A stretch of 63,876 nt of DNA, counting the filler, from Octopus bimaculoides (taxonomy: Eukaryota), in NCBI RefSeq assembly GCF_001194135.2. It is 11 parts of 10 records of this genome, joined end to end, with 100 filler letters (N's around TTAATTAATTAA, not from the genome) between each part and the next. Parts side by side here need not be neighbours in the genome. Positions count along the whole stretch, not along the records: positions 10,017 to 31,397 come from NC_068981.1; 10 more parts are not named here. One strand, given 5' to 3'. Made by a program: the position numbers and the translations under genes. The first letter of the stretch is position 1; every line of letters starts with the position of its first letter. Shown in pieces: positions 9,917 through 31,094 of this stretch. Below the pieces are notes generated by a model. That model was not told where the DNA came from. It saw only the letters and a program-made list of their open reading frames with translations, and did no database searches.

Positions 9917-10016
9917 NNNNNNNNNNNNNNNNNNNNNNNNNNNNNNNNNNNNNNNNNNNNTTAATTAATTAANNNNNNNNNNNNNNNNNNNNNNNNNNNN
10001 NNNNNNNNNNNNNNNN

Positions 10017-10075
<59 letters not shown>

Positions 10076-10213
10076 CACATACAAACATACATATACATGT
10101 ATATACATATATATATATACACACATTTATACAGAAGCATTTTTATATATATAAAATGTTATATACACACACATATATATATATATATGTATATATACGT
10201 GTGATTATATATA

Positions 10214-10905: not shown

Positions 10906-11631
10906 NNNNNNNNNNNNNNNNNNNNNNNNNNNNNNNNNNNNNNNNNNNNNNNNNNNNNNNNNNNNNNNNNNNNNNNNNNNNNNNNNNNNNNNNNNNNNNN
11001 NNNNNNNNNNNNNNNNNNNNNNNNNNNNNNNNNNNNNNNNNNNNNNNNNNNNNNNNNNNNNNNNNNNNNNNNNNNNNNNNNNNNNNNNNNNNNNNNNNNN
11101 NNNNNNNNNNNNNNNNNNNNNNNNNNNNNNNNNNNNNNNNNNNNNNNNNNNNNNNNNNNNNNNNNNNNNNNNNNNNNNNNNNNNNNNNNNNNNNNNNNNN
11201 NNNNNNNNNNNNNNNNNNNNNNNNNNNNNNNNNNNNNNNNNNNNNNNNNNNNNNNNNNNNNNNNNNNNNNNNNNNNNNNNNNNNNNNNNNNNNNNNNNNN
11301 NNNNNNNNNNNNNNNNNNNNNNNNNNNNNNNNNNNNNNNNNNNNNNNNNNNNNNNNNNNNNNNNNNNNNNNNNNNNNNNNNNNNNNNNNNNNNNNNNNNN
11401 NNNNNNNNNNNNNNNNNNNNNNNNNNNNNNNNNNNNNNNNNNNNNNNNNNNNNNNNNNNNNNNNNNNNNNNNNNNNNNNNNNNNNNNNNNNNNNNNNNNN
11501 NNNNNNNNNNNNNNNNNNNNNNNNNNNNNNNNNNNNNNNNNNNNNNNNNNNNNNNNNAATGCTTATTACAGTGTTAATGTTTTGTCTTGTCTTTTATTAA
11601 TATAATAATAATAATATTATTATTATTATTA

Positions 11632-11662
<31 letters not shown>

Positions 11663-11876
11663 GTGATGGTGGTGTTATATGGAGTTAATGGAAACTCCAA
11701 TGAGTGTTGGATTTTGTTTGTGTTTTGGGTTCAATAACCATGAATTTTGATGAAAAATAAACCCCAGTCAACATGGTATGAAAAGTCAATTGGTAGTTAT
11801 ATTTTATTTGACGCCGTTAAATGTGGATGGCTATTTTTTAGTTTGTTTTGGGTTTTTTTTCTTTTTTTAGGTTTTT

Positions 11877-11932
11877 TTTATTGTTATTTCATCTCCAATG
11901 ATAGGAAATAAATTTCAGTAAAATTTTTTATT
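11877..11932 (-). terminator. Candidate NIPBL polyadenylation signals (AATAAA at 11932-11927 and 11882-11877)
   Basis: Two minus-strand AATAAA hexamers 330-385 nt past the stop codon, within an AU-rich 3' region. Confidence 0.4.
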
Positions 11933-12261
11933 TTTGTTTTCAAAATTTTAGCACAAAAATAATTTGTTTTACCATATTTTCAATCAGTTTGTTATCCTTT
12001 TATATATATATATTTATATATATATATATATAATTAACCATTTTGTAATTCTGCATATAACAGTGATCATTTTACAATGTTTCATGGTATTTTTAGCCTC
12101 CAATGATAGAAAATTAACCAGTCCAGAATGTATACCCCGACCCCTCCAAATCCCTCCCAACAGACAATTCCAACTCATAACCCTAACCCAAACCACTTCT
12201 GCTGTTGCTCTTGATCTCAACTATTTTAGTGATTTGCGTTCTAGTAATGAACAACAATGAA

Positions 12262-15200
12262 TCAAGCAATGAAATCAGGATCTTCATCGCTGTCGCCATC
12301 ATCTTCGCTATCACTCAGACGACGGCGTTTCTTACGCATCTTCTTCTTAACAGGAGGTTTCGGAGTTAACTTGGGAGAGGGTTTGATTTTCTTTTTCCTT
12401 TCAAGTAAAGAAGCATAATGCTGGTTACGAGGGGTGTGATGAAATGAGGGTTGTTGCTGGCTTCGAGGTTTGATCCCATCGGAGCCATCGGAAACTTTGT
12501 CAGAGACTTGCACTTCAGTGACTTCTTTAGACTCAAGATGATTCTCAGCTCCTTCAGGTACCGAGTTCTTTGCATGTGGAATGGTTTTGGCATTGTCATC
12601 AGAGTCGTCATCATCTGGAGGGTCAATACTCAACATTAAATGTTTGAAGTCAAGGAATTCTTCAACCAATTTTCGTTTCTCTTCATCACTGATAATATCT
12701 GATGGCTTTTTCTTTAGTAACTCAATAGTTGAGCTTGGTTGAAAATCTATAGCATATTTCCTTGCCAAAGGCTTATCATAAACTTTAGCTGCTTCTGCTG
12801 GTGAATAACGATGGACTTTCGTGTCGGTGAAACCATATAACTCTTTGAGATGCTGTTTCAGGACAAGAAGCAGTACACATCCTTGAGAGATGCGGCAAAT
12901 CTCCTGCAGCGGCATCACGTTCTCAGGTAATCTTTCCATGATGCTTTCAATTTCTTCATCATCCTCATCATCAAATGTTTCCCCTTTCTTTCTGTCAATC
13001 TCCTTCCTTGGTAGAAGACATTCTTTGAAAGACTGTAGCAGGTTAGAGCCAGACACTGAGACAATGATGTCTATTTGATGAATGATAAATAATGGTTCGT
13101 CTTGAGATTGGTAAGCGAAAAAGGCAAGGTTATCAGCTATATACAGGAGTTCTTCAAGTGATGCACGTGCCGAATCATCAAACAGGTTCAAAAGAGAAGT
13201 GAGTAATGCTCTTCGATAGGTTCGGTTAGCTCGAAGAACTGTATAAAGGAATGCATTTAAACTAAGATGGACAGCATCCTGGGTCCTAAGGCCTCGAACT
13301 GGCTCTGAAGGATCTTGAATGATACTTTGGAATTTATATGACATCTTTACACCTTGTAGAGCCTTCATATGAATGAACCCAGGATACTTCTTATCAATAT
13401 CTTGAAGTTGTTGATCTGATCTCACCCTCACACTTGGATCTGCTTCTGTTCCCATTGTTATTAAATAGGGAACACACTGTACAGGGTGAATGAGACCCTG
13501 GCGAAGAACAAGCTGAATAATATCAAGAGCAGACTGTCGTACCTGGAAATTGGCACAAATGAAAGATTCAAGCACTTGTTTCAGGTACACCTGTATGATG
13601 GTGCTCGCCATTCCTGATTGTAAATCTCCCATGTCTCGTAGATCTTCTGCTTTACATTGTTTTCTCCATTCGGCATCAGCTATGATCATCTTGGTTTCTT
13701 CTTCAACCAGATAGCTGTGCAGATTTCGCAATGCTTGGATCTTCAGCTTTACAGCTGCTTCACTGTTTGTAAAGAGATAATAATAGAGTCCTTTCAGTGT
13801 TTTTCCAAGCATATATTCATAATGACGGACACACATGAAGCCAAGCCCGGTCAAAGCTTTTACACGCACTTCCTCGTCTTCGTGCTCAATAAAATAGTAC
13901 AGAACATCAAATACTCGGTCTTTTATCGGAACTTTTGCTTTCGTCTCTCCCATCTCCTTGGAATCAAAATCAAAATGACGGCACAAAAGGCCAACAGTGA
14001 AAAGTGACCGCAGCAATGTAGGTCTTCTCTTTTGAAGGGTTGGATTGTTAGAATTTTCTTTGTGGTCAGCCATCAACTTAGAAAGAACTCCAAAGAATTT
14101 TTGGAAACAATCTTTAACAAGTCGATAATTATGACTGACATTATTAACAACGGCACCAAGGCAACTGACACAGCTCTGTAAAACCATCATCCCATGTTTT
14201 AGAATCAACTTCATCATGTCTTCCTCAAGTTGTGCCAAAAACGTTTCACTCGGATGGTCCATAAGAGGCACCACCATTTCAAGAATACGTGCAACGAAAT
14301 GCAGCACCATAACGTCACCTTGTGTGTTACATCTGATATTTAAATATGGCTGAAGTGTTATTGCATGTTGAACCATGAGATCAGGTTTAATCTTACTGAA
14401 GAGATGTAGTGTGGTCAAACATGCTATCAAACGCTGTGGATGAGAAGTATTATCGCCATCCACTGACTTTTCTTCTAAACTCATGACATTTTCAACAAGG
14501 CAGTTAACAATTTGCTGAGAAGCCAACAAAGCACTCTTATTATAGTGACCGTCATCATCTTTTTTTAACAAATTTTCCAGCAAATGTTCAAAGAACTCCA
14601 AACCACTGTCTTTACAGGCAGCAACAACTTCTGTAATATTCACAACACGTCTCAAAAGTCTGGAAGAGTCTTTCTCTCGTAAAGGACAAAACCACATCAT
14701 TTGGAAAACCTCGTTGACTAGCTTTTTTATGCCTTCTTCATCATTGACTCTGCGGATCATTTTCACACACATCTCAGGTATTTTGTTAAAATCAGGTTGT
14801 CCGAGGCAAATGTCTTTGAAAATCTTTATCACTCTTTTCCGTACACTGATACCTGTATCGAGAATTCGATCACATAACATGTCGTAATATTTAGGGATCA
14901 ATTCAGGCTTGATCAGTATGAACTTTCCAACAAGTTCTACAGCCGCTTCTCGGACAGATGTCGACTGATCTAGAAATCTCCCGTGTACTCCACGCTGCAT
15001 ATCATCACGCGCCAGAATTCCAGGGTCAGCTTCTACAACCGCTGTTAAACATTTCATGGCCTTTGTTCGTACTGCCACAGCTGTTTCACTGAGCACACGC
15101 AAAATTTGAGTCAGGTATATGTCAAAACTCTGAGCAAACGGTCTCTTAGAGCTGAGGTAGCGTGCTACAAGGCATGAATCTTCAGCATCTAATCTACACT

Positions 15201-18200
15201 GTAACTGTCTCATGTTGTTTGCTGGCTTGTTGGGGATTTCAATGATTGTCATTAGAAAGGTTTTCCCTTTCTCTGCAATCTCTAAGGTTTGGTTCACTTC
15301 TTCAACCCTTTCATCTTCATCTTCTTCTTTGAGTTGTGAAACTTTCTTTTGTAATTTCTCTGCTTCAACAGTAAGATCCCGATACCACTGGGCAATGTAA
15401 AACTGTCTTGCAAACAATAATGCTGGGTCACTTTGTCCATTCTCGGCCAAATAATACAACATGGCCTTCTGTAAACTTTGTGTCTGTTTTATTTCATCAA
15501 GACTTTCCTTACTGCCTTCCTTCTTAAAGTCATTCTCTTCAGTCACTTCATTGTCTATTTTTGAAATAATTTCCTCTATCATTTCTGGGTTCGTCTGACT
15601 AGTGACGGCATCACTGCGAAGACGAGCAGCAACTATGCCTAAATATTCTAATGAAGCAACTCTCAATGACATATCTGTAGATTTATTGCTGAACTGCTGT
15701 ACAAGAATTCTCCCAAGAAGACTAAGCAACAATTCTGAAGCTGGCCATTCTGGCTTGTTCACTGTAGATAGTAAATCCTGAACAAAGTTTTCAAAAAGGG
15801 GCCGATAGTCATCTTCGCTTTTGGCAGTACATTTCTTAAGAAAGACAGAGAGGAAGTTATAACCAGTTCTCATGGCTGTCTCATATGATGTTACAATAAT
15901 GACATCATCATCTGCTTCCCTTTTTTTCCTCTCCAATGATTTTTTATCTATTACAGGTTTCTCATCAATACAAATTTCAGACGCGACAGATTTTCGTGAA
16001 GGCAATTTAATGACACACTGGATCAACTGCAAGGCAAGCGCTGTCACCATTTGTATGGACTCGTCAGCATTTAGGCGATAGTTGCGGAGGTTCCGCTTGG
16101 TGGATGGTAGTCGAGCTAAAGAGGCAAAAATATCTTCCAAAATAAGTTGTCTGTGTTTATCGTACTTACAAAAAATATTTGTTACCAGCTTCATTGAATT
16201 TAACTGCATTTCACTAATGTTCTCAACAAAAAAAGGGGACACACTTAATGTAGACACTTGCAAAATGACAGTGTCTGTCAGTTCTTGAATGTGCAACAAC
16301 TCACTCAGAGCCTTGATGAGCTCACAGAGTTTATTATATAAAGTTATTGTAGCTTTGTGCTTTACTGAGTGGGTACGAGCTCGTTTGGATTTCAGGTTAC
16401 CTTGGTAACCTCCTTTTGCATGAGGATCTATTTTATATACAGGATCAAACTCTGGGTAAATTGTATTCTGAAGCTGCCACTTACCAAATAGAATGATTCT
16501 TTCAATAACATCATCTAAATACACCTGCTTTGGCATTTCTGGAGCAGTGATTATGTAAAGAGCTGCTAGAGATGCATCCATACTCCTCATCACTCGCTCC
16601 ATCATCATTTCTCTCCACATTACAGACTCTTCGTCATCTTCATCTTCGTCTTCTTCAGGTCTTATATTTGGTGCCAACTTCACACCATCTCGTACATTCC
16701 ACTGAAGTATTGTAAGTAACTTTACAAGTTTGTCGGAGGGAATTTGATTCGTTACTTTCTGGGCTTTCAATTTTGCTGCCTCCCCACAAATTTCGGCAAG
16801 AACCTGTCTTGCAATAAGGGATTCTGGTGGACATTCCGTGTCGTCATCGTTTGGATCAAGAGAACCAAAATCAATCTCCTCCGCACTGTCAAATACGTAT
16901 TCCACTGACTGAGCAAATTTTCTAAATGTTGGACTATCAAATAACTCCTCGGAACTTAATGCCCTCTGATTCATACGTTTGTGTCGCTTCCGACGTTTTT
17001 TCCGAGCTGATTCATCCATTTCCTCCTCTTCGTCACTTGAGTACAATCTTTTTGTACTTTTTATTTTTTTCATCGTGTCACAATCTGTCCTAATTCTTCC
17101 TCCAGAGACAACAGACTGAAGTGTTTTGGCATCTAAAAGTTCTAACACCACAATGGGCTTAGAATTTTTAGCAACTAAAAGGTCAACTTGCTTACTAAAA
17201 GATATCTCTTCGACATCCTCTGGTTTGATTTGCCTTTGTTGTTGTTGCTGCTGCTGCAGCAGAAAATCCTCCTGTAGAACCATAGGGTAGGGGGGACACT
17301 GCTTTGCTTTATCTGTTTTCTCCGAAGACATGTTGCGTGTTCGTCGTTTACACAGCTCCATATCTGCCTCTACACAGGAAGAACTAGCAGTGGCTGTGAA
17401 TGATGCAGGTAATCTGCTACTCTGGTGGAAATCTCCACTACAAGAGGCAGAATCTCCCTGTAGGCCAAACTGCAACTGGTGCAGAGACATGTTATCTGAT
17501 CCACTCTTCCTGCGACCAGACATGTCCGGACAAATGTTCATACACTCAGGGGAAGGCTTGCTCTCAAAAGATTCACTGCACTTCGGTCCTAAGGTAGATT
17601 TGGCACTACTGGTTCGCCTCTTACAGGAGTAAGCAGACCCTGCAGATTCAGGTGGAGATAATACATCTAAATTGATGTGTTCAGCCACTGCAGCCAGAGG
17701 GGGTGACACAGTATTCTGATCAAATCTTTGATTTTGAGCAAAATGTTGAAACTGTTGTTGTTGCTGCTGCTGTTGATACAAATTTGGTGAAAGAAAATTA
17801 GCATGAGATGAATATTGAGAGTTTGTTGGGTATCGTGGTGATGAATCTGACTGTATTGGTTGCAGTCTGGGAGAAACATTATTCTGATTTAGATGATATG
17901 GCATGGTAAAATGACCCGAATGGTATTGTGGAAGAGGTGGTTGCTGGCTTTGAATAAGTTCATGAGGGGGTTGTGGGTGAAGTAAGTGCTGCTGTTGCTG
18001 CCTGGTTTGAATGAAGTTTGCAGACTGCTGCTGCGATAGGTTCTGATGGGGTGTTCGACTGTCAAAACCTCGAACATCAAATCCACTGCCACTACTACTA
18101 CTACTGCTACTACTACTACTACTACTACTACTGGCAGTGGAAGTAGTTGTAGTAATGTTACCACCGACACCAGCAGTAGTGGTGGTAGCATTGTTAGTTT

Positions 18201-18585
18201 TAGTATGAAAAACACTGGGGTTCTGTCGAAGAACCATTTTTAACAGATCAGGGATATCTCCTTCTATGGCATCACTTGCTAAACTGTCTTTTAATTCAAT
18301 GTGATCCGTAGAAGTTTGTTTCAGAGCATGAGCAAGCTGCTGAGCTAGTGTTTCATCGTGAGTCTCAAGTATTTTACGAGCGTCATCAGCAATTTTCGGA
18401 TTAAAGAGGAGACTTTTATTGTGCATAGCTGGGGAGAGAGGTGTTGGCAGGGGAAGCTCAGGCAGTAAGTCTGTAAGACTAGTTACTCCTGCCAATGTTA
18501 TAATAGGAACACTTGGAATTTCGCCGTTCATCATGCGATTCAATACATCGCTTCTGCTACATGCCACTACATCTTGAACAACCAT
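12262..18585 (-). CDS. NIPBL: Nipped-B-like protein (Scc2/delangin, cohesin loader), single coding exon, 2107 aa
   Basis: Uninterrupted 6324-nt ORF with no Ns. The segment MNGEIPSVPIITLAGVTSLTDLLPELPLPTPL...STDHIELKD matches the conserved NIPBL N-terminus (human MNGDMPHVPITTLAGIASLTDLL...STDHIELKD). It is followed by a low-complexity Q/S/T region, a basic NLS-like KKRRKRHKR, and a long HEAT-repeat body with NIPBL-typical segments (DIFASLARLP, VRTKAMKCL, DQSTSVREAAVELVGKF, RILDTGISVRKRVIKI, QGLIHPVQCVPYLI). The conserved start is M19 at 18531. Confidence 0.97.
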   Translation of the reverse strand: MVVQDVVACSRSDVLNRMMNGEIPSVPIITLAGVTSLTDLLPELPLPTPLSPAMHNKSLLFNPKIADDARKILETHDETLAQQLAHALKQTSTDHIELKDSLASDAIEGDIPDLLKMVLRQNPSVFHTKTNNATTTTAGVGGNITTTTSTASSSSSSSSSSSSSSGSGFDVRGFDSRTPHQNLSQQQSANFIQTRQQQQHLLHPQPPHELIQSQQPPLPQYHSGHFTMPYHLNQNNVSPRLQPIQSDSSPRYPTNSQYSSHANFLSPNLYQQQQQQQQFQHFAQNQRFDQNTVSPPLAAVAEHINLDVLSPPESAGSAYSCKRRTSSAKSTLGPKCSESFESKPSPECMNICPDMSGRRKSGSDNMSLHQLQFGLQGDSASCSGDFHQSSRLPASFTATASSSCVEADMELCKRRTRNMSSEKTDKAKQCPPYPMVLQEDFLLQQQQQQQRQIKPEDVEEISFSKQVDLLVAKNSKPIVVLELLDAKTLQSVVSGGRIRTDCDTMKKIKSTKRLYSSDEEEEMDESARKKRRKRHKRMNQRALSSEELFDSPTFRKFAQSVEYVFDSAEEIDFGSLDPNDDDTECPPESLIARQVLAEICGEAAKLKAQKVTNQIPSDKLVKLLTILQWNVRDGVKLAPNIRPEEDEDEDDEESVMWREMMMERVMRSMDASLAALYIITAPEMPKQVYLDDVIERIILFGKWQLQNTIYPEFDPVYKIDPHAKGGYQGNLKSKRARTHSVKHKATITLYNKLCELIKALSELLHIQELTDTVILQVSTLSVSPFFVENISEMQLNSMKLVTNIFCKYDKHRQLILEDIFASLARLPSTKRNLRNYRLNADESIQMVTALALQLIQCVIKLPSRKSVASEICIDEKPVIDKKSLERKKREADDDVIIVTSYETAMRTGYNFLSVFLKKCTAKSEDDYRPLFENFVQDLLSTVNKPEWPASELLLSLLGRILVQQFSNKSTDMSLRVASLEYLGIVAARLRSDAVTSQTNPEMIEEIISKIDNEVTEENDFKKEGSKESLDEIKQTQSLQKAMLYYLAENGQSDPALLFARQFYIAQWYRDLTVEAEKLQKKVSQLKEEDEDERVEEVNQTLEIAEKGKTFLMTIIEIPNKPANNMRQLQCRLDAEDSCLVARYLSSKRPFAQSFDIYLTQILRVLSETAVAVRTKAMKCLTAVVEADPGILARDDMQRGVHGRFLDQSTSVREAAVELVGKFILIKPELIPKYYDMLCDRILDTGISVRKRVIKIFKDICLGQPDFNKIPEMCVKMIRRVNDEEGIKKLVNEVFQMMWFCPLREKDSSRLLRRVVNITEVVAACKDSGLEFFEHLLENLLKKDDDGHYNKSALLASQQIVNCLVENVMSLEEKSVDGDNTSHPQRLIACLTTLHLFSKIKPDLMVQHAITLQPYLNIRCNTQGDVMVLHFVARILEMVVPLMDHPSETFLAQLEEDMMKLILKHGMMVLQSCVSCLGAVVNNVSHNYRLVKDCFQKFFGVLSKLMADHKENSNNPTLQKRRPTLLRSLFTVGLLCRHFDFDSKEMGETKAKVPIKDRVFDVLYYFIEHEDEEVRVKALTGLGFMCVRHYEYMLGKTLKGLYYYLFTNSEAAVKLKIQALRNLHSYLVEEETKMIIADAEWRKQCKAEDLRDMGDLQSGMASTIIQVYLKQVLESFICANFQVRQSALDIIQLVLRQGLIHPVQCVPYLITMGTEADPSVRVRSDQQLQDIDKKYPGFIHMKALQGVKMSYKFQSIIQDPSEPVRGLRTQDAVHLSLNAFLYTVLRANRTYRRALLTSLLNLFDDSARASLEELLYIADNLAFFAYQSQDEPLFIIHQIDIIVSVSGSNLLQSFKECLLPRKEIDRKKGETFDDEDDEEIESIMERLPENVMPLQEICRISQGCVLLLVLKQHLKELYGFTDTKVHRYSPAEAAKVYDKPLARKYAIDFQPSSTIELLKKKPSDIISDEEKRKLVEEFLDFKHLMLSIDPPDDDDSDDNAKTIPHAKNSVPEGAENHLESKEVTEVQVSDKVSDGSDGIKPRSQQQPSFHHTPRNQHYASLLERKKKIKPSPKLTPKPPVKKKMRKKRRRLSDSEDDGDSDEDPDFIA

Positions 18586-18809
18586 CTTTTAGTATTCCTG
18601 CTATGGTAATTCCATCAAATTGGTCCCCAAAATTGTCATTTAAAACACAAACGCAACTGCTGACACTGCCCAAAAACTGGTTCTTCGTTAATGGCATAAA
18701 GACAATTTTCATTCACTGAGCTTTTGAAAAATTCTGTTGAAAGTATTGTTGTACTTGGCACTTCACTGATTTTTGACAGTTAAAACTTATGTCATCGATA
18801 TATACAACG

Positions 18810-18817
18810 GATTGGCT
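18810..18817 (-). promoter_or_regulatory. CCAAT box (AGCCAATC), possible proximal NIPBL promoter
   Basis: Good NF-Y consensus about 230 nt upstream of the ATG. A single motif. Confidence 0.25.
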
Positions 18818-19409
18818 GGAGTTCAATATTTGTTTGGAGAGCGGTAGAGGGTTTTAACGTATCTGCTTTGTTTTTCGATTAAAATAAATCAGAATCAGAA
18901 ATGAAAAATAAGGAAGCTTCAGAATAATTCTAGCCAAATTTCTGTTACTTGAAAGTATGAAAGTTTGATAAAAACATGTGTAAAATTTATTCAACGTTTG
19001 TTAAGAGTTTAGACAAGAATTCCGTTCAGAGAATCTTCCTTAAAGCAACGATTTAAAAAGTAAAGGATTTAAAGAGTACAAACTATTTTACTAAACTCTT
19101 TATGAATGATATTTTCGTCCTGGTGTGTTTCCATAATTATCTTTTAAAAATAAGTGTAAGTTGGAGGTAGATAAGAGAAACAGGAAAGTAGGAATTGATT
19201 ACAATACAAACGGGATTCAAAACAAACCCGATGTCAATGTCGCTGGAGGTTGCAGGTTCAATCCTGTTACGGTTATATCAAAAATGTAGAAATGCCTAAT
19301 CCTTTAGAACAACTTTGATCGGCCGGGGACGTTAACAATAGTAAATTTACTGCTGATATTCCGTGTCCGAGTGAGAAACTATAAAACCATCATCTCCGAC
19401 TGTGGTCTT

Positions 19410-19417
19410 ACTTCCGG
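19410..19417 (-). promoter_or_regulatory. ETS/GABP-type motif CCGGAAGT
   Basis: Exact core, 0.8 kb upstream of the NIPBL ATG. A single short motif that could be chance. Confidence 0.25.
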
Positions 19418-20121
19418 TTTAAGGTCAGCTGAAGCAACTTAATCAGTTCTTAGTTATATTTAGTCAGTTTCTTATTTCGGGACGTTTATTTATTTATTTA
19501 ATGCTGCTACTACAACTTCTAGTGGTGGTGGTGACAGTGATAGGTGAATTTGACTTAGTCCGTGATGAAGTGAGATCGATTTCAAGACACGTTATATCCG
19601 AATGAAATAAGAACGGAACTGACATATAAACATTAATCTCTCCTCACAACTTTAGAGATGTAATAAACTATAAAACACGTTGGTAGAGAATAAAAAAACG
19701 GGGATGATAAAGATAAAATGTCTTCAAAAATGAGAGGAAAATGTTATTTGAAAAGAGAGATCAGGGTATCCCGGCATAAGTCTTTGATAGGACGTATGTT
19801 ACATACTTGTAAATATCAATTCAACTGAGAACGATGGGAAGGAGGAGGAGGAGGGAGAATTGCACTGTTGAGTATTTTAGATGTTTATATATATTATATA
19901 TATGGATATGGATTTGGTATGTGGAAATGGAGAAGATAATCAGTGTTTCGATTCTGGAGGTCGCAGTGGTCAATTGTAGTATTCCTAGTGCGATTAAACT
20001 ACATTGGTCGGTTTGTAGCGTTTTCTTTTTAAACAGAAGATCAAATAATGTCGGTGGAGAGAAGCAAAACAGAATGCCAGGAGAAAAAGACAACAATTAT
20101 TGAGAAATGAGAAAACATTAC

Positions 20122-20370
20122 CTGAGGTCTGTAGCGACAGTTTTTGTTTGTATTTTTTTCTATTGTGTTTGTTTTTAATGAAGAAGTAATGTGGCGATGT
20201 GTTTGTTTTCGTTCACATCCTCTTCGTTTCATAAACAAACACACACACACACACACAGTCTCACATTTATAGACTCACAGCCATGTTCACACACACACAC
20301 ACATACACCGATGAACACTCACACACACACGCTCACTTCTCGCTTTCACATACACAATATGGCGTCGTGG
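20122..20370 (-). other. Candidate non-coding first (5'UTR) exon of NIPBL
   Basis: Strong minus-strand donor CCTCAG|GTAATG at 20122/20121, about 1.5 kb upstream of the CDS, next to a local CpG cluster and a YY1-type motif. The 5' boundary and the acceptor are not determined. Confidence 0.45.
20356..20364 (+). promoter_or_regulatory. YY1-type motif AATATGGCG in a CpG cluster (candidate NIPBL promoter)
   Basis: Matches AAnATGGCG and lies at the upstream edge of the candidate first exon. Confidence 0.4.
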
Positions 20371-21656
20371 TGGCGGTGTTGGACAATTAAAGTAGAGTTA
20401 CTGTTTTTTAACTTCTTTGCTCTGTTGTGCTTGGATGTTCCACTTGTGTAGACTTATAAATAAAGAATCTTTTGATAGATATCAATACAGTTTGTAATGA
20501 AAACAATAGATCAGACCAATATTCTCCTCGCTCAGTCTTTTCAAAATATTCAGTGTTGATCCGTATCAGAGAGTGTAACACCCTACCAGGTTTTACGGCC
20601 ACCACCAAACTCCAAACAATAACAGCAACAACAAACAGACATCAAATAGAATAGTTCAGGTTTTAAATCAATAATCAGTCCACATTGTTCCTGTCTAATT
20701 CTTCTCATCATCGTTTCGTTAACGTTTCTTCTTCCTCGTTTTTTGATGTTTTTCTTCAAAACTAATGTTGTTAGAATCGCCTATTTTTCTGGACTTTGTC
20801 CGGGTTCTTCGCTTATTATTTCCATTCCTATAGAGAAAGTAAACATCCAGGAGTTGGTTGTATGGTAGGGCTGCAGAGATGGGACGAGTGTTAATTAAAA
20901 GATAATGAGAAGATAAAAGGAGCGAGTCGGGTAGGAGAGACGGTGAGCAGCCATTGTTGACNNNNNNNNNNNNNNNNNNNNNNNNNNNNNNNNNNNNNNN
21001 NNNNNNNNNNNNNNNNNNNNNNNNNNNNNNNNNNNNNNNNNNNNNNNNNNNNNNNNNNNNNNNNNNNNNNNNNNNNNNNNNNNNNNNNNNNNNNNNNNNN
21101 NNNNNNNNNNNNNNNNNNNNNNNNNNNNNNNNNNNNNNNNNNNNNNNNNNNNNNNNNNNNNNNNNNNNNNNNNNNNNNNNNNNNNNNNNNNNNNNNNNNN
21201 NNNNNNNNNNNNNNNNNNNNNNNNNNNNNNNNNNNNNNNNNNNNNNNNNNNNNNNNNNNNNNNNNNNNNNNNNNNNNNNNNNNNNNNNNNNNNNNNNNNN
21301 NNNNNNNNNNNNNNNNNNNNNNNNNNNNNNNNNNNNNNNNNNNNNNNNNNNNNNNNNNNNNNNNNNNNNNNNNNNNNNNNNNNNNNNNNNNNNNNNNNNN
21401 NNNNNNNNNNNNNNNNNNNNNNNNNNNNNNNNNNNNNNNNNNNNNNNNNNNNNNNNNNNNNNNNNNNNNNNNNNNNNNNNNNNNNNNNNNNNNNNNNNNN
21501 NNNNNNNNNNNNNNNNNNNNNNNNNNNNNNNACTAATACTCCTCCGTTCCAAATTTACTGGACTTAAATTAGAAACTGTTATTAGATCGCTCTCTATGGA
21601 AAGCGAGGGAGAAGCCAATTATATGTATGCATATACACATATACATACATACATAC

Positions 21657-21687
<31 letters not shown>

Positions 21688-22471
21688 CAGACATGTTGCT
21701 TCAGGTGGTGAGGTTCCAGTTCTGGAGTTGTGGGAAGTGTTGAGTCATCCCTCAAATTTACTGGACTTAAATTAGAAACTGTTATATCATAATAAGAATT
21801 CTCTCATTATGTGTTTACTGTGAATTTTTTGGCTTATTCTATTGTCAACATGTGTTCGAAGCTAAGTTTTAAGAACAGTAAAAAATTGGTATACTTCGAT
21901 AGGAGTGGTAACAACTGAAAACTAATGTATTTAAGCCGCTAATATATTTTTAAATTAAGAGCAATTAAAAATATAACACTGGGAGCAATTAGATATAATA
22001 AAGCGGATACTGCTTGCTGCACTTCAACAACAGTGTCAGAAGTCTGGTATTGATGGTCATAAATAAACTAGCCATAAACCCAACTTGAAAACTATTATAA
22101 ATATTTTCGTTGGTGCAATACCTTGTAAATTTCGTCATGCATTTTATTTATTGTTATGATATATGAATCAGGTGCATTTATTTCTAATTTGATTTTACAA
22201 AGAAAATATGTTGTCAGTTGTCTAGCATCGATCCCAGATTCAATCCAACAGCATGTCACCTTGGGCAAACGTCTTTTATTAGCTTCAGTTCGACCTAAAC
22301 CTTGTGAATAAAATGAGTAGGCAATACTAATGTCTGTGGAATACTCAGACGGTTACACTTATAGTCAGTGAGTGAATAATTCACCTGATCAGACTATTAG
22401 ATCGCTCTCTATGGAAAGCGAGGGAGAAGCCAATTATATGTATGCATATACACATATACATACATACATAC

Positions 22472-22506
<35 letters not shown>

Positions 22507-23084
22507 CAGACATGTTGCTTCAGGTGGTGAGGTTCCAGTTCTGGAGTTGTGGGAAGTGTTGAGTCATCCCTCAATTACTATCAATTATTCCCAGGTCTGT
22601 TCTGACCTAAAAAACTCAGTTATGTCACCTTTGATCATAAAGCCATAATAAAACTAGTTGTTGTAGAATGAATCAACAGAAAGGGGTCCAAAGTCTGCAA
22701 TACAGCTGCTTAATCTAGAGAGGGTGGTGTCTTCCAGTTTGCCAAAAGAAATTTGTCCATATGTTTGCATTTGATGAGAATTTCTAATCTAGAATTCAAC
22801 AGTGGAGTGGAATTCTTAAATCTAAAAATCTAAAAAGGATATGCGACCTTTCAGCAATGCATAAGTTGCATTTCTTATATTCATGCCATATTAACATATG
22901 GCATGAATTTTTCTCTGATTTTCCACTTGATTGTATATTGCATGGAGTTGGTCTTCAGAGGCCATATGTGGTTAGCCAAATTAGTGGCTTTACTTTTGTT
23001 GATGTACTGGAAAGAAGATCTTACCTTAATAGAAAAGTAAACTATACAAAACATACATATATATATATATATATATCAACGGAG

Positions 23085-24115
23085 ACAATTGAAGTAACAG
23101 CAATAGAACCCAATCGACAACCAAGCATGTGGAAATATGTAGGGGCAAAGGAAGGCCCCTTCAGAACCCACTTTAATAAACCACAAGTCCTCCTTCAACA
23201 TCCCAGAGAGACATAACACCACAACCATAGCCACGCACTCCTGAGCTTTGAAAGTACCATGGAGTACAGATGAAATGGAAGATCATAGAAAGATACAAAC
23301 CATACTTCAATAGCAACAGGAAGTGCAGATTATACCTGGCTGAGAAGAGAGCAATTTTAAAAAGTACCCAACACCCAGATGTTTACCTAAATAGCAAGAG
23401 TGAGGTGTTTAATCCAAGCCCACATGAAAGGAAGTACAATGTATTGTACCTATGCACCCCACCATGACTGCAATCACAGGTCCCTTGCCTCAACCTTCCA
23501 CCAATGCCCTCAGGCCCAGCAAAAAGAGATTGATCAAAGCCCATACCAATGCACCCATGTACATAAACACACACACACACACATGACCCTATAAGATGGA
23601 CACCCAACAAAATAAACTGTCTCCCACCACCCCAACACATACCCCTTCACACAAATTGTACACATATACACAGACCCCACCACACATACATTACACATCA
23701 CGCTTACATACACCCCCACCCTCCTGACTTTATTTTTTACAGAAAGAAAACAGACCAACAAACACAGCTATATATACCTACATCACCCAAAGAATTATAC
23801 ATATAACACTGCTACACATACCCCATCCCCTTGGGAGCACCACATTAATAATACACACTTTCCCCACTTCAAGATAACTCTTGCTAGCTTCACCCAACCA
23901 AGGGACATAACTCCTAACTTAATTGCTAACCCTTTTTCATTGCACCACCTTTTTCACAGCAGCCACTGACTGGTTGTGCTAATCCACCTCTGACAATAGA
24001 GAGCAGTCGCCATATTCCCTTCCATATCGGCTAACTCTGATGAGTGTAAAGTTATATAATCGGATTGTTACCTAACACTCCATTCTTTACATGAAACCGA
24101 CTGATAAGATAAGCC
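23085..24115 (+). mobile_element. Penelope-like element, 3' portion: decayed GIY-YIG endonuclease plus 3' region with a hammerhead-like motif
   Basis: The frames KYVGAKEGPFRTHFNK and KWKIIERYKPYFNSNRKCRLYLAEKRAILKS...LNSKSEVFNPSPHERKY match the C-terminus of PLE GIY-YIG domains. CTGATGA...GAAAC occurs at 24037-24097. Both ends abut (TA)n. Confidence 0.75.
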
Positions 24116-24449
24116 ATGATATATATATATATATATATATATNNNNNNNNNNNNNNNNNNNNNNNNNNNNNNNNNNNNNNNNNNNNNNNNNNNNNNNNNN
24201 NNNNNNNNNNNNNNNNNNNNNNNNNNNNNNNNNNNNNNNNNNNNNNNNNNNNNNNNTATATATATATATATATTTATATTCACTCGCAGCTTTCAACTGA
24301 AGATTTTAAACATTTTTTTTTTACTTTCTTTCTCAGTCTTTTCCTTCTTAGAAACAATAACAATTTTCGCTTTATTTTTTGGCAGAATAATTGATTACAG
24401 AAAATTTTGAGCCTCTCTCCCCCTTCTTCTCTCTTCCCCCAGTTTGTGC

Positions 24450-25345
24450 AACAGGCATGCAGTCCTCCTTGGAATCTGTGCTGGAAGGACAAACAAGGAG
24501 ATTTCAGACATCCACAAAGGCAGCAGAAGGATGGCAGAAAAGGTCAAAAAGAAGCTGGAAGATTCAGGATTAAACAACAAGGCAACAGGAGAGAGAGAGG
24601 AAAATTCATGATCAATGATCTAATGCCATCAGAGCGTCAGAATTCATCAGTGACATCCAGGATATCATCAACAATGATCCCAGCAAGTCAATGCATACCA
24701 TTGCATGGGAGAAAGATGTAGACGAAAAGCTCATCAGGCTGGTGGTGCATGAGGACATTTGCCATTTTTCATACAAGATGAGGAAGGGGCAATTCCTATC
24801 CCAAGGTAATGCAGGAAAAGTGACTCAAGCACACCAAGAAGCTGATCAACAAGTTGAAGCACCCACTGGAGTCAGACATGCCATGGTTCCGCTCTGACAA
24901 GAAGAATTTCTGCCAAGACCAGATCAACTCCCATAACAACAGGTGGTTCACTATCTTACCTATGAACATGCCCAGAATCATGCAGACGAAATTTCCAGTG
25001 ACAATCATGGTCTACAGTATTGTCAGCAGTGCAGGTGACACCATACCACTCCACTTCTTCCCTGAGAGCCTTAGGCTGAACACCAATTGCTACACCTGTG
25101 TTTTGGATGAGGCAGTAAGGCCCTGGATCAACTGAGTAGCTGCTGGGAGGCCATACATGTGGCAGTATGACTCTGCGCCCTGTCACACCAGCCAGAAGAC
25201 CCAGGCCTGGCTATCAAAGAATTTCTTCAATCACACAATACCTGACATTTGGTCTCTCAACTCGTCTGACTGCAACCCCCATCAATTTCTTTGTGCAGGG
25301 GTGTGGTGGAATGAGAGACCAACAAATCCAGCTGCAACATAAAGG
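24450..25345 (+). mobile_element. Decayed maT (DD37D, Bmmar1-like) Tc1/mariner transposase
   Basis: Frameshifted peptides: DPSKSMHTIA...VVHEDI..FSYKMRKGQFLS; WFRSDKKNFCQDQINSHNNRW; MQTKFPVTIMVYSIVSSAGD; WQYDSAPCHTSQKTQAWL...WSLNSSDCNP. Confidence 0.85.
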
Positions 25346-25386
25346 ACACCAAGAAATTTGGAATTGTGTAAATGTATGAATTTTAA

Positions 25387-25417
<31 letters not shown>

Positions 25418-26010
25418 CTGCCTTTTATAGATAAGATTAAATAAGCAATTAATCCTTTTTACTATAGACACAAGGCATGAAATTTGGGAGAGGGGGATAA
25501 TCGATTGCATCAACCCCAGTGCATAACTGGTACTTAATTTATCAACCCCGAAAGGATGAAAGGCAAAGTTGACCTTGGCGGAATTTGAGCACAGAATGTA
25601 GAGACAGGCAAAATACCGCTTACCAGCCCTGGTCAAAACCATCCAACCCATGCCAGCATGGACAACGGACGATAATGATGATGATGAATGCTGGCTACCA
25701 CCACAAAAGGGTAATAACTATCCCAGCTATATTTCTATCTTTACTTGTCTACATTCTGCTTAAGCCGTTGCAGGGTTAATCCTTATACACAGCAACTTGT
25801 TTGATCTACAATTGTTTGAAATACCTTTTGAATCCCATTTCAGTTGATCAATCATTGTTAAAGGAGATACTGAAGTTTAAAAAGCTGTTTCAATAATTCA
25901 TTTTCAATAAAGATCCGCTTAAACTTTTGGTGGTAGACAAAAGCAAATGTAAAACCTGCTGGAAAAATAGATTAACGCAACTGAAAAAACCAGAGGCAAA
26001 TTTGCTGGTT

Positions 26011-26320
26011 GGAAGTTAATAGTTATTTATTATTAACAGAAAATTAATCATCTTTACTTACAGCTGTTTCAATAAATACTCAGTAAATACTAGATAAATA
26101 TTTATATGACCTGAGCTACACTGAATCTATGAACATAATTAATCTGCTACACTGAATCTATGAACACATATAAAACATCCAAAGGTATATTTTTTTTTCC
26201 TCTGAAGATATTATGCTCAGGTCATATTAATATAAATTTAATATTTACTGAGTATTAATTGAAACAGCTGTAAGTGAAAATGATTAATTTGCTGTTAATA
26301 ATAAACAATTATTAACTTCC
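26011..26320. mobile_element. MITE-like foldback element with about 105-bp inverted arms
   Basis: 26011-26116 is the reverse complement of 26215-26320 with about a dozen mismatches; the spacer contains a 21-bp tandem duplication. Confidence 0.75.
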
Positions 26321-26850
26321 CAATCTCCATTTTCTTTTTCTTCTTTTATATGAATATAAATTATATGTTTTTATATATATATATACCTATTATTTTAAGG
26401 AAATTAATTCCTCCAAAATACTAGATATTGGACCAGTATTTCCTTGGATGAAACCATCCCTTCACAAGGTTAACATATCCTCTAATCATGCGTATGTGTA
26501 TGTATATNNNNNNNNNNNNNNNNNNNNNNNNNNNNNNNNNNNNNNNNNNNNNNNNNNNNNNNNNNNNNNNNNNNNNNNNNNNNNNNNNNNNNNNNNNNNN
26601 NNNNNNNNNNNNNNNNNNNNNNNNNNNNNNNNNNNNNNNNNNNNNNNNNNNNNNNNNNNNNNNNNNNNNNNNNNNNNNNNNNNNNNNNNNNNNNNNNNNN
26701 NNNNNNNNNNNNNNNNNNNNNNNNNNNNNNNNNNNNNNNNNNNNNNNNNNNNNNNNNNNNNNNNNNNNNNNNNNNNNNNNNNNNNNNNNNNNNNNNNNNN
26801 NNNNNNNNNNNNNNNNNNNNNNNACATACATACATACATACATACATACA

Positions 26851-26912
<62 letters not shown>

Positions 26913-27280
26913 TAGCAGAAAGCACAAGGATGTGGAAACAGCATCGACCTGTTTAGAAATAGGAGCTAAATCCCTAATATACAACCACCAGAAAGCACCA
27001 AATACCAGAAAATCAACAGTAGGCAAGGAAACGGTCAAAGAATCAAGATAGTAAAAAAGCACACCTTTAAAGAATACACCCTTCAGACATCCTATACCAT
27101 GGTTTTAGGTTCTGGCCCGTGAGCCTCAGCCTTCATCAGTATGGGTCACTGGTGAAAATACTAAGTCCATCACATTATAAATCTGCCTGTGTTATGGCTC
27201 GTTTTGAGTTGAACCAATCCACATGGTGCAAAATATATATATATGTATATATATATATATCATCATCATCATCATCAACA

Positions 27281-27595
27281 TGATCATCATCATCGTTTAA
27301 CGTCTGCTTTCCATGCTGGCATGGGTTGGACGGTTTGACTGGGGACTGGTGATCCAGATGGCTGCACCAGGCTCCAATCTGATCTGGCAAAGTTTCTACA
27401 GCTGGATGTCCTTCCTAACGTCAACCACTCTGAGAGTGTAGTGTGTGCTTTTACGTGCAACCAGCACGAGGGCCAGTCAGGTGGTACTGACAACAGCCAC
27501 ACTCAAATGGTATTTTTACATGTCACCTGCACGGGAGCCAGTCCAGCGGCACTGGCAACGCCCTCGCTCGAATGTTGCTTTCCACATACCACCGG
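27281..27595 (-). mobile_element. RTE LINE 3' end with (GAT)n tail
   Basis: catcatcatcgtttaacgtctgctttccatgctggcatgggttggacg..., near-identical to 56341-56626. Confidence 0.75.
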
Positions 27596-28619
27596 CACAT
27601 ATATATATAAGCAAAAAATATTGAAGTACATGGCTTAGTGGTTAGGGTGTTGCACTCATGATTGTGAGATTGTGGGTTCAATTTCCAGGCCAGGTGTTCA
27701 TTGTGTTCTTGAGCAAAGCACTTCATTTCACATTGCTCTGCGATCATTTCATCTCACATGTGGCCCATAGTATACTTGTACAGGTAATGTCTATTTGATG
27801 GCAGGAGTGAGCTTATGCATACATAAGAAAGGTGAGCAACTACAGTTGCTCACCAGTAAAGGCTGCGGGGGTGCCGACGGAGGCCCCAGCTCCCAAAGAA
27901 GACAAAAAGAGAAAAAGGAAAAGGGGAAAAAAGAACGGGAGATGGGTGGTGGAAGCCATTGTAATGCCGACCAAACCCGAAGCCCCTCCGGTGGGAAATG
28001 TGCCACCGGAGAGGGAGACTCTGTCAGAGGGAATTGTGCCACTGACAGAGCAGTGCGAGGTCTCCCTGCTAGGAAGAGGAGTTATATGTTCTCCTGTACC
28101 ATGAGGGAGGGACTATTGACAGTTACTTGAACCATGAGTGCGGCCAAGAAAGGAACTACTTGGCGTGTGCGAGTAGTTCAAGATGGCCTCCACAGGTGGC
28201 TGCGGAGGTCGTGACGAGAAATATCGTGACAAAAGTCAGGAGTAATTTTGACAAAGAGAACTTCGTCGACCTCACCGTGAACTCCGACCTAACAATGAAA
28301 TTTTGTCTGGCAGGAACAGGTTATTTGTGAGGGCTCCGCAGTGGGGTGGATTAGTTGTGTTGCAGTATTGTAAATTGATTTTAATATTGTAAATTGATTC
28401 TATTGTAAATTGATTTTAATGTAAGAAAGGTAAAACCTTAATGTGTGTTTTAAAAGAAAAAAAGGACAATGTTTTCGGGAGGCGGCAATCGGTGGGCGTC
28501 ATTCGTTCTCCCCCATCTTATATCATTTTGTTGTCGTTCATGCTCATTAATGTTTGTGTCCAGCCCGCAGCTACTCCCCTTTCTATGTACCGCTCTTGTA
28601 GCGAATTAAATGAAATAAA

Positions 28620-29041
28620 GTAGCTTGCTTACCAACCACATGGTTCCGGGTTCGGTCCCACTGTGTGGCACCTTGGGCAAGTGTCTTCTACTATAGCCAT
28701 CGGGCCGACCAAAGCCTTGTAAGTGGATTTGGTAGACGGAAACTGAAAGAAGCCCGTNNNNNNNNNNAAAGCCTTGTAAGTGGATTTGGTAGACGGAAAC
28801 TGAAAGAAGCCCGTCGTATATATGTATATATATATATGTGTGTGTGTGTTTGTGTATCTATGTTTGTCCCCCCAACATCGCTTGACAACCGATGCTGGTG
28901 TGTAACTTAGCGGTTTGGCAAAAGCAAACGATAGAATAAGTACTAGGCTTACAAAGAATAATAAGTCCTGGGGTCGATTTGCTCGACTAAAGGCGGTACT
29001 CCAGCATGGCCACAGTCAAATGACTGAAGCAAGTAAAAGAG
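28620..29041 (+). mobile_element. SINE family B, 5'-truncated, with a gap-flanking duplication
   Basis: Same body sequence as 4880-5276. Confidence 0.8.
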
Positions 29042-29149
29042 TAATTATACCCAATAAATTACTTATACATCTACAATACATTTTTAAAAATACAATTCCT
29101 AATGATATTTAATTATAAAAGTACAATAAGATACCTTTATCATATACAT

Positions 29150-29226
29150 CAAATGGCAATGGAGGTCCAGTAGAATAAGATAGGAATCAAAGGGATCCAT
29201 GGGCAAAAAGTGATTGAGAACCACTG
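29150..29226 (-). mobile_element. Possible hAT/Charlie-type terminal remnant
   Basis: The minus strand begins CAGTGGTTCTCAA followed by ...ATGGATCCCTTTG, typical of hAT ends. The other end was not found. Confidence 0.35.
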
Positions 29227-30084
29227 GTTTAAACCATTGATAATTGATCATTCTTGGCTGTGTGAAGAATATATGTGTCTTCAGTTATACATTATTAATG
29301 AGTAGGTTTGAGGTGACAATTCATATCTCTGATTTGCATTTTAGACCACCAGAAAATAAATTATCTAAAACACAAAAACAAGGTATAATTATTTTTTGAA
29401 TGAAAATCTACAAGAAACCACCAAATGTTATTACTAGGATTGTAACAGAAGCAAACATAAAGCCAGTCTTCTGTGGACAATAGGTTAATCTTAATAATCA
29501 CTTATGAACAGACAGGATGTGTTATAAATGTTGTGTGATTGGTTTCTAGTTGTGTCATAATAATGTATTCTGTTGTTGAATGAGATGTGGTAGACTAAGA
29601 CCTATTGGTTTCAAAGTTTGGTACAAGGTTAGTAAGTACGAGGGTGGGGGTAAGTCAATTATGTCATCAACTCCAGTGCTGAACTGGTATTTTTTTTATC
29701 AACCCCAAAAAAGAGGAAAGGAAGAAGAAAAAAATCAACCTCAGTAGGATTTGAACTCAGAGATTAAGGATGAACGAGATGCTTCTAAGCATTTTATGGG
29801 GCATGTTAGCAGTTCTGCTAGCTTGTTAACTTGGTAGCGTCAGACATATTACATGATAGATTTGAAATAACTGAACATGGCTGGTAAATGTTTAGGTCCT
29901 ACACGGACAAGACTTGTATGTTTAATACTTTCATTATCATGAATGTCTATGAGCAAATTACCAGCACCCTGGTGTATTTGGTTTTTACGTTGCGTGGCTG
30001 TTCCATCAACCGAACATCAGCTTGGCTGTTCCATCAACCGAACATCAGCTTGGCTTGTGGTCATACAACTATGAATAAGTTATA

Positions 30085-30313
30085 TTGGGTTGTCCGGAAA
30101 GTTCGTGCCGATTTATAGTAGCTTACCTTTCGACTTATTTGCCATGAAACCACCTCAATTCTGCGAAGAGGGTATTTTCAAGTTAAAGGAAAGATGGAGA
30201 AGCATTGTGCAACAAAATGGTTCATATCTGGTTGATTAAAAATGTAATGGTAAGTATTTATTGACCCTTTTTCTTTCCTTTAAAAATCGGCACGTACTTT
30301 CCGAATAACCCAA
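30085..30313 (+). mobile_element. Internally deleted mariner (mini-element) with both TIRs and TA target duplication
   Basis: TTGGGTTGTCCGGAAAGTTCGTGCCGATTT ... AAATCGGCACGTACTTTCCGAATAACCCAA form a 30-bp inverted pair flanked by TA. The interior encodes the mariner C-terminus EEGIFKLKERWRSIVQQNGSYLVD*. Confidence 0.9.
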
Positions 30314-31094
30314 TACTTCTGGGAGAGTTACTCCCCTGTGTAATTGCATATACAGTGAAAGGAATATATTAAGTTAAGGATGTCGGGTAAAGGAGATAAG
30401 TAAGTCTAAAGGTTAGCACCTAATTTAGTAGAATGAAGATCAAAAAGAACTCCTTCAACACAATAAATTAATATTATTGAGTGACGTTTATAGACAGACA
30501 GCTCCATCAGAAGCTTCTTATGCTAGGCACAGAATTCTGTCAAGGGCAACAACTTTGTTCTACCAACGTTTTCACTTACAAAAAATCAACTTCGAAGCTT
30601 TTCCATAATAAATTCTGCAGATGCAGATATGATTGACTGGTTAAGTAGTATCCTTCAGTTCCTGTAGTCATGAGTTCGATCCCACTGTGCCCTATTTTAA
30701 ACAAGTTTCTTCTTCAATAGCCTTGAATTGAAAACTGGTGTTATATTATGTATTTGTGTACAGTAATATAAATACTTCAAACCTGTTGATAGAAACCAAC
30801 CCAGGACTGCCAGTGATTCTATGAGACAAACCTCTGTTTTCAAGTGTTTAGAATTCTAACTTCCCATCAAAATTTCATGCTTATTAATGTTCTAAGCTCT
30901 AACTTTGAAAGAGAAATTTCTTTTAATATATTCTCTGTTATTTTGAAAATTAAATGAAGTTATGTGTCTATATATAAAACTGATACTTTCACTATTATAT
31001 GGTTTCAATTTCAATTACTTTCACTATGTATTTATAACTTTATTGCTTTTGACCTAAATAAATATATTTATGTATGTATATATATATATATATA

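Follow-up and report, generated by a model that had tools for sequence, protein, structure and literature searches.

A probable ancient retrogene of the cohesin loader NIPBL/Scc2 in Octopus bimaculoides, coexisting with an intron-containing NIPBL gene

How does a gene that is divided among dozens of exons in other animals come to lie in a genome as one uninterrupted coding frame? The question is raised by the gene for the cohesin loader NIPBL/Scc2 in Octopus bimaculoides. NIPBL is essential, rate-limiting and dosage-sensitive for cohesin loading and loop extrusion, its heterozygous loss leads to Cornelia de Lange syndrome in humans, and the human gene has 47 exons. The window analysed here is a stretch of 63,876 nucleotides (nt), filler included, joined from 11 parts of 10 records of assembly GCF_001194135.2, and the gene lies in the part at positions 10017-31397 (NC_068981.1); coordinates below are positions of the window. 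We posit that the gene is probably a functional and ancient NIPBL/Scc2 retrogene, coexisting with the intron-containing parent from which it was copied.

The gene is a single minus-strand open reading frame (ORF) at 12262..18585 of the piece 10017-31397, with 2107 codons from ATG to TGA and a coding sequence (CDS) of 6324 nt. Its translation contains zero internal stops, the nearest N runs (10906-11557 and 20962-21531) leave the ORF free of gaps, and by our own arithmetic 2107 stop-free codons have a chance of approximately (61/64)^2107, or about 1e-44 (GC content ~40%). Record CM046601.1 of assembly GCA_001194135.2 encodes an identical protein. Pfam recognises the complete Nipped-B_C profile (PF12830, positions 1-186/186) at amino acids (aa) 1660-1841, with E=2.4e-51 and 174.9 bits against a cut-off of 26.4, and Cohesin_HEAT (PF12765) at aa 1178-1219, with E=2.1e-13 and 50.9 bits against a cut-off of 21. 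In a phmmer search of the PDB, aa 525-1881 match the human NIPBL chains 6wg3_E, 6wge_E and 7w1m_E (E=0, 1674-1683 bits), and fungal Scc2/Mis4 chains from Chaetomium, S. pombe and yeast are also matched (1e-16 to 5e-50). The N-terminal motif MNGEIPSVPI.TLAG..SLTDLLPELPLPTP aligns column by column with 22 animal NIPBLs in a multiple alignment, and a C-terminal tail is present after Nipped-B_C. Among the best 120 of 287 protein matches, the closest is 'nipped-B-like protein A' of Argonauta hians (89% identity); other molluscan NIPBLs share 60-65% identity, and vertebrate NIPBL 54% across ~68% of the length. The domain order is that of the NIPBL/Nipped-B/Scc2/Mis4 family, namely the N-terminal motif, a disordered linker, a HEAT hook with Cohesin_HEAT, and Nipped-B_C; in the octopus protein the linker (~aa 131-520) is presumably disordered as well. 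By every sequence criterion examined the gene encodes a full-length NIPBL/Scc2, in agreement with the preliminary description of this locus, which had recognised the whole loader in one intron-free ORF of 2107 codons. The N-terminal region is the MAU2/Scc4-binding segment in characterised NIPBLs. Judged from these likenesses, the octopus protein would be expected to do the canonical job, with its N-terminus binding MAU2 and its HEAT hook engaging cohesin and DNA and stimulating the cohesin ATPase for loading and loop extrusion.

The gene is expressed, as was to be checked according to the preliminary description. Coverage of the CDS by RNA-seq reads and RNA contigs is even over its whole length, with transcription in all RNA runs examined, and the RNA contigs at 12006-18120 are colinear with the genome. 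No splice joint was found in a search of the RNA over the CDS, the only joints being slippage artefacts in (ACT)n, (CAG)n and (TA)n tracts.

Coding introns are absent from this gene (0 in 6324 nt), as against approximately 44 coding blocks across 27.8 kb in the NIPBL gene of the scallop Pecten maximus. The ancestral molluscan gene was intron-rich, and a general intron poverty of molluscan NIPBL, a possibility that the preliminary description had raised against its own reading, is contradicted by the scallop. Other coleoids share the octopus structure. The gene of Argonauta hians (6366 nt for 2121 aa) gives one tblastn high-scoring segment pair (HSP) on its locus, and in the cuttlefish Acanthosepion pharaonis aa 1-2068 of the octopus protein align in a single HSP. 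The locus of the latter contains one open frame (L003:18345-24653, 2102 aa) that starts, like the octopus protein, with MVVQDVV, and in the cuttlefish this start comes directly after a stop codon. The uninterrupted ORF is also found in a sequence from a second decapodiform (Logan contig L006). In a neighbour-joining tree the four coleoid proteins group together as a single clade within Mollusca. Because the same uninterrupted ORF is found in Argonauta and the cuttlefish, the intron loss predates the octopod-decapod split, and we infer that all coding introns were lost once, before that divergence, in an event not general to molluscs. The loss is therefore lineage-specific, as had been supposed, in so far as it is absent from the scallop, but the lineage concerned is wider than this one genome.

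The same octopus genome has a second NIPBL gene, which contains introns, is spliced and is expressed. With genomic DNA contigs aligned to the window at 85% identity, separate DNA contigs of 1-1.5 kb at approximately single-copy depth were found to match only exon-sized pieces of the CDS, in three runs of the octopus and in a second species. Scallop exon borders mapped on the octopus CDS place ancestral boundaries at 13021, 13368 and 18469 (one scallop exon corresponds to 13167-13021, the exon of aa 1590-1657 to 13368-13168, and exon 1 to 18585-18469), and the ends of the paralogue pieces agree with these boundaries exactly at 13021 and 13368, and within 4 nt at 18473. Beyond the match end at 13021 the DNA reads, on the gene strand, GTAAGTATTTTT, with the canonical splice donor GTAAGT. 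The 13 mismatches of the DNA recur in two RNA contigs (5588 and 5251 nt), which then enter a different coding sequence, GIFMKNNSNQ, where the window gene has CLLPRKEIDR; because the DNA runs into GTAAGTATTTTT while the RNA runs into another exon, the paralogue intron is spliced out. The paralogue RNA contigs are also colinear with a second match at 13230-13263, and their depths are 52.8 and 79.9 versus 36.4 and 43.5 for the window gene.

All four placed paralogue mismatches are synonymous third-position changes, and the neighbouring 30 nt, only 19/30 identical, nonetheless encode YVADNLAFF versus YIADNLAFF. Over the 95-nt piece, identity to the window gene is 86% for the paralogue, 81% for the cuttlefish orthologue and 79% for scallop, values that would fit an old split against a common background of codon usage. 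The similarity of exon 1 starts at codon 13, upstream of the ancestral methionine, which suggests that the copied messenger RNA (mRNA) included part of the parent's leader. The second gene would accordingly be the descendant of the ancestral locus, that is, the parent, and itself under protein-level constraint. Replacement of the parent, which the preliminary description had considered possible, is contradicted for octopus by this spliced and expressed gene. Re-alignment of RNA contigs at 80% on 12262-17200 returned no more paralogue pieces, in a search in which the known paralogue contigs did not align either.

Because assembly gaps flank the window gene on both sides, the raw DNA evidence was examined. 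A 6107-nt DNA contig (12008-18114) is present in Logan runs of three independent studies of the same organism, and its depths there (59.6, 12.6 and 5.3) are those of the unique flanking contigs 18109-19533 and 11641-12026. The second species provides a 6076-nt DNA contig over the CDS with 164 differences, and the only interruptions of DNA contiguity are microsatellites, namely (TA)n near 12000-12036 and (ACT)n near 18085-18133. The intron-free CDS is genuine single-copy genomic DNA and no cDNA contaminant, which answers an earlier concern that the contig might be transcript-derived or misassembled. Contaminating cDNA or a misassembly that put a transcript into the scaffold between two gaps might be suspected from the N runs on either side of the gene, but such an artefact is hardly credible when CDS contigs at single-copy depth occur in three DNA studies and the second species, when DNA contigs reach into both non-coding flanks, and when the gap-free loci of two other species have the same structure. 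The ratio of non-synonymous to synonymous substitution (dN/dS, Nei-Gojobori) is 0.077 between Octopus and Argonauta and 0.075 between the cuttlefish and the second decapod, falling to 0.046 and 0.041, respectively, in the HEAT body; between octopods and decapods synonymous sites are saturated (proportion of synonymous differences, pS, ~0.8) and the non-synonymous proportion (pN) is 0.155. The ORF is intact and stop-free in all four coleoid sequences. The intronless gene is under strong purifying selection in both coleoid lineages, in accord with what had been argued earlier from the lack of transposon insertions in the ORF. A young or decaying retrocopy, a processed pseudogene open by chance, would fit an intronless gene with repeats on its flanks, but it can be discounted almost entirely, given a copy common to octopods and decapods, saturated synonymous divergence, dN/dS of 0.04-0.08, 2107 codons without a stop in any of four species, and expression. 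The preliminary description would have demoted the gene to a young retrocopy on finding a second, intron-bearing copy under relaxed selection here; the second copy was found, but selection is not relaxed and the copy is older than the octopod-decapod split. In a comparison of 1606 ungapped columns, identity to the proteins of Lingula, Lineus and amphioxus is 61.0, 62.0 and 55.7% for octopus, as compared with 62.5, 61.6 and 57.0% for scallop and 61.1, 60.0 and 55.2% for oyster. The rate of evolution of the intronless gene does not exceed that of the single NIPBL in other molluscs, and from this rate we argue for a canonical function.

An mRNA-derived origin remains the best explanation of an intron-free CDS beside ~44 scallop coding blocks, as first proposed. 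In the coleoid stem, before the octopod-decapod split, a fully spliced, full-length NIPBL mRNA carrying a short piece of its 5' leader would have been reverse-transcribed and inserted into the genome, by which more than 40 coding introns would have been removed in one go; strong purifying selection has since preserved the copy in both coleoid lineages, and the source gene would have been kept too. Retroposition is preferred on grounds of parsimony, because it takes one event, as against a duplication plus an in-place conversion by cDNA. The latter, in which cDNA recombined with the ancestral locus and the intron-bearing gene is an earlier DNA-level duplicate, draws on an established mechanism of cDNA-mediated intron loss (PMC3652778). 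The 35 nt conserved before the ATG across coleoids fit either model, and synteny gives no verdict between them where no gene neighbours lie within 10 kb to compare. It would nevertheless need two events, the conversion being complete over more than 40 introns and 6.3 kb, and conservation between octopods and decapods ends upstream of -35 and past the stop, which is what a copy of the mRNA body alone in a new place would leave; we consider wholesale loss in place unlikely. Less probable still is an orphan retrogene, in which the intronless copy would have supplanted a multi-exon parent that then disappeared. The retrogene does evolve like a single-copy orthologue, and no second cephalopod NIPBL is among the best 120 of 287 protein matches, but that absence is uninformative because the collection lacks even the protein of the window gene itself. 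Against replacement stand the second octopus locus, with its ancestral exon boundaries, GTAAGT donor and synonymous differences, and its spliced RNA contigs of 5.2-5.6 kb, which are as deep as or deeper than those of the retrogene. Several observations weigh against a retrogene coexisting with its parent. The paralogue is known only from ~250 nt and three 30-nt ends. A 101-aa chimeric probe with its two specific decapeptides retrieved only short exon-level ORFs of other animals, and in a HMMER scan of 1.84 billion representatives with aa 900-2000 no sequence carried the paralogue peptides; to judge from the exon-level ORFs retrieved, the searched protein collection does not include exons of the cephalopod paralogue. 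The cephalopods compared were Octopus, Argonauta, the cuttlefish and the second decapod, all of them coleoids. No target-site duplication was recognisable at the window gene, without a systematic search and with none expected at such an age, and an A-rich tract 330-430 nt past the stop (11830-11940, minus strand, AATAAAAAAAACCTAAAAAAAGAAAAAAAACCCAAAAC...) is degenerate, lies in an AT-rich region and carries no weight as a poly(A) relic. No neighbouring genes were called within 10 kb of the octopus, Argonauta and cuttlefish loci by which synteny with an ancestral locus could be judged, and the RNA libraries are unstranded, the leader being presumably on the gene strand. With these points in the balance, we still hold the coexisting retrogene to be the probable explanation.

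Features of the NIPBL/Scc2 locus and of the stretches matched by the paralogue (window positions)
Feature	Position	Strand	Evidence
Complete intron-free NIPBL/Scc2 CDS, 2107 aa + stop	12262..18585	-	ORF, translation, Pfam, PDB, RNA and DNA contigs
N-terminal motif, aa 19-115	18241..18531	-	Alignment with 22 animal NIPBLs
Coleoid-specific 18-aa N-terminal extension MVVQDVVACSRSDVLNRM, precedes the conserved motif	18532-18585	-	Alignment
Low-complexity linker, ~aa 131-520, poly-Ser/Thr and poly-Gln tracts from microsatellites	17026..18195	-	Translation, read pile-ups
HEAT-repeat body (aa 525-1881), with homology to the region solved in human NIPBL	12943..17013	-	phmmer vs PDB
Cohesin_HEAT (PF12765), aa 1178-1219	14929..15054	-	Pfam
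Nipped-B_C (PF12830), aa 1660-1841	13063..13608	-	Pfam
3' untranslated region (UTR), minimum extent, including A-rich tract ~330-430 nt past the stop	11636..12261	-	RNA contigs 12006-18120 and 11636-11972 at CDS-like depth; Argonauta homology
Transcribed upstream leader or promoter-proximal region, ends at gap 20962	18586..20961	- (strand inferred)	RNA coverage
Stretch matched 86% by paralogue exon (13 mismatches/95)	13021..13115	-	DNA contigs (1481, 1363 nt) and RNA contigs (5588, 5251 nt)
Stretch of aa 13-38 matched 87% by paralogue exon 1 (10 mismatches/77)	18473..18549	-	DNA contigs of 1021, 914, 1021 and 297 nt, four runs
Further paralogue matches	13230..13368	-	13230-13263 in RNA contigs; 13301-13368 in a second-species DNA contig

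The transcript extends well beyond the CDS at its 5' end. RNA coverage is continuous over 18586-20961 and depth is zero at 21861-22189, from which it follows that transcription starts in or just past the gap 20962-21531; the N run at 20962 conceals the likely promoter or transcription start of the gene. RNA depth falls four- to five-fold at ~18598, with reads ending there. An AG lies at 18599-18598, 12 nt upstream of the ATG, and AG followed by GAAT is also present in Argonauta and the second decapod. No splice joints were reported within 18200-19870 or within 19913-20961, a result in which a joint bridging both stretches would not show. It is possible that a 5'UTR intron has its acceptor 12-13 nt before the ATG, in a leader of at least 2.4 kb. 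The term single exon, used in the preliminary description, is therefore shown for the CDS alone, given this leader and the possible intron. Candidate 5'UTR donors near 20122 and 20003 were rejected as being without support.

Flank homology in blastn and tblastx searches is confined to the two octopods, covering ~2.4 kb of leader and ~0.5 kb of 3' UTR (535 nt beyond the stop in Argonauta); beyond this pair the searches returned only repeats and low-complexity noise. Over ~1.8 kb the leader is 65-71% identical to that of Argonauta, above the ~56% expected by our own calculation at neutral sites with a synonymous divergence (dS) of 0.66. In an alignment of positions -80..-1, conservation across all four coleoid sequences is confined to the final ~35 nt upstream of the ATG. 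A 15-nt motif, TTTGATGG(A/C)ATT(A/G)CC, located 20-35 nt 5' of the ATG (window 18586-18620), is kept in all four and may be a retained piece of the parental 5'UTR, or a regulatory or splice-related element.

Several sites in the transcribed region vary among reads or species. In the leader, one RNA contig set has a 12-nt (GTG)4 insertion polymorphism at 19521, and the adjacent 19522 G>T is seen in nearly all reads of two runs. At 15281 (T/G, Glu1102Ala), all or most reads of two RNA runs have G, as do two RNA contig sets, whereas two others have T, which looks like a non-synonymous polymorphism between individuals. A plus-strand T>C at 12854, equivalent to A>G in the mRNA and to Gln1911Arg, occurs in 4 of 21 reads from one RNA run, in 0 of 17 from another and in no DNA contig; it could be noise or A-to-I recoding, which is common in octopus. 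The linker contains microsatellites, (ACT/AGT)n encoding Ser/Thr and (CAG/CAA)n encoding Gln, that vary in length and break every short-read assembly, with read pile-ups and slippage joints at 18085-18133 and 17236-17775 and an in-frame 6-nt insertion at 17986 in the second species. Across codons 1-520 (17026-18585), Octopus-Argonauta dS is 0.38 versus 0.85 in the HEAT body, although the protein is less constrained there (dN/dS 0.155), and this low dS may stem from repeat composition or from constraint at the RNA level.

Two deposited or assembled sequences require comment. The deposited A. pharaonis model (P0003) looks multi-exonic, with 1884 aa over 14.6 kb; it has two small upstream exons (10001-10090 and 17873-17992), enters the ORF at 19182 and omits ~280 codons. 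Its 5' end is probably a mis-annotation with dubious mini-exons in place of the true N-terminus. A Logan contig protein of 54% identity (P0014) was considered as a Nautilus NIPBL and rejected, as the neighbour-joining tree groups it with caenogastropods.

Repeats flank the gene. RNA on 21532-31397 consists of multi-copy repeat pile-ups only, without neighbouring exons. ORF fragments at 24400-25350 and 31218-31397 resemble, by eye, remnants of mariner/Tc1 transposases (...WQYDSAPCHTSQKTQAWL... and ...KCWDKIPLDVVRAAIDDFPKRL...), and the blocks around such fragments are multi-copy in RNA and DNA pile-ups; nine flank ORFs resembling transposase had no Pfam match at E<=0.01. N runs at 10906-11557, 20962-21531, 24143-24256, 26508-26823 and 28758-28767 are also present in the public record (3138 N there), and most are edged by simple repeats of (TA)n or (CA)n type and are therefore assembly gaps at microsatellites.

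Within its family the octopus gene stands apart by its zero coding introns, as opposed to the ~44 coding blocks of scallop, by its 18-aa coleoid N-terminal extension and by being one of two NIPBL genes in its genome. Zebrafish likewise have two, nipbla and nipblb, derived from whole-genome duplication. That teleost pair arose at the DNA level and both members have introns, whereas one of the two octopus paralogues would be mRNA-derived and is intronless. Functional retrogenes beside their parents include mammalian PGK2 and many other Drosophila and mammalian cases (PMC5470649), and the octopus gene resembles these in that an intronless copy of a multi-exon gene is expressed, is held by purifying selection and has its parent beside it. 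It differs from them in being very long (6.3-kb CDS) and older than the octopod-decapod split, in coding for an essential, dosage-sensitive chromatin factor, and in that the behaviour of a canonical single-copy orthologue is seen in the copy and not obviously in the parent. In retrogene replacement, as described for amphioxus SYCP1 (PMC5803294) and human orphan retrogenes (PMC3548309), the parent is lost. These share with the octopus gene a single-exon retrocopy of a multi-exon essential gene of chromosome biology that apparently has the ancestral function, but the octopus keeps an intron-bearing, spliced and expressed paralogue. No account of this octopus or coleoid NIPBL gene was found in a search of the literature on cephalopod NIPBL, cohesin and retrogenes; a functional retrogene with its parent is a known class, of which the NIPBL case is apparently new, while the gene models themselves are in public annotations.

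Coleoids may run two NIPBL genes, and it is plausible, if speculative, that the compact intronless gene and the long one with its many introns share out the work by tissue, developmental stage or expression speed. More specifically, coleoids might have kept two loaders for hundreds of millions of years, with the intronless gene as the principal NIPBL and the parent moving toward a specialised role in certain stages or tissues, a split that may be tied to very long introns and a reorganised three-dimensional (3D) genome; we offer this scenario tentatively and as a rather doubtful one. If true, the intronless loader could be made quickly, without a giant primary transcript. Two loaders would constitute a natural experiment in how loader dosage and regulation can be partitioned, a test of how long a functional retrocopy can be, and a means to ask whether an intron-free chromatin organiser benefits genomes with huge introns. 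Interest in the pair rises if the two split the ancestral role, and studies of cohesin and the 3D genome in cephalopods would need to reckon with two loader genes.

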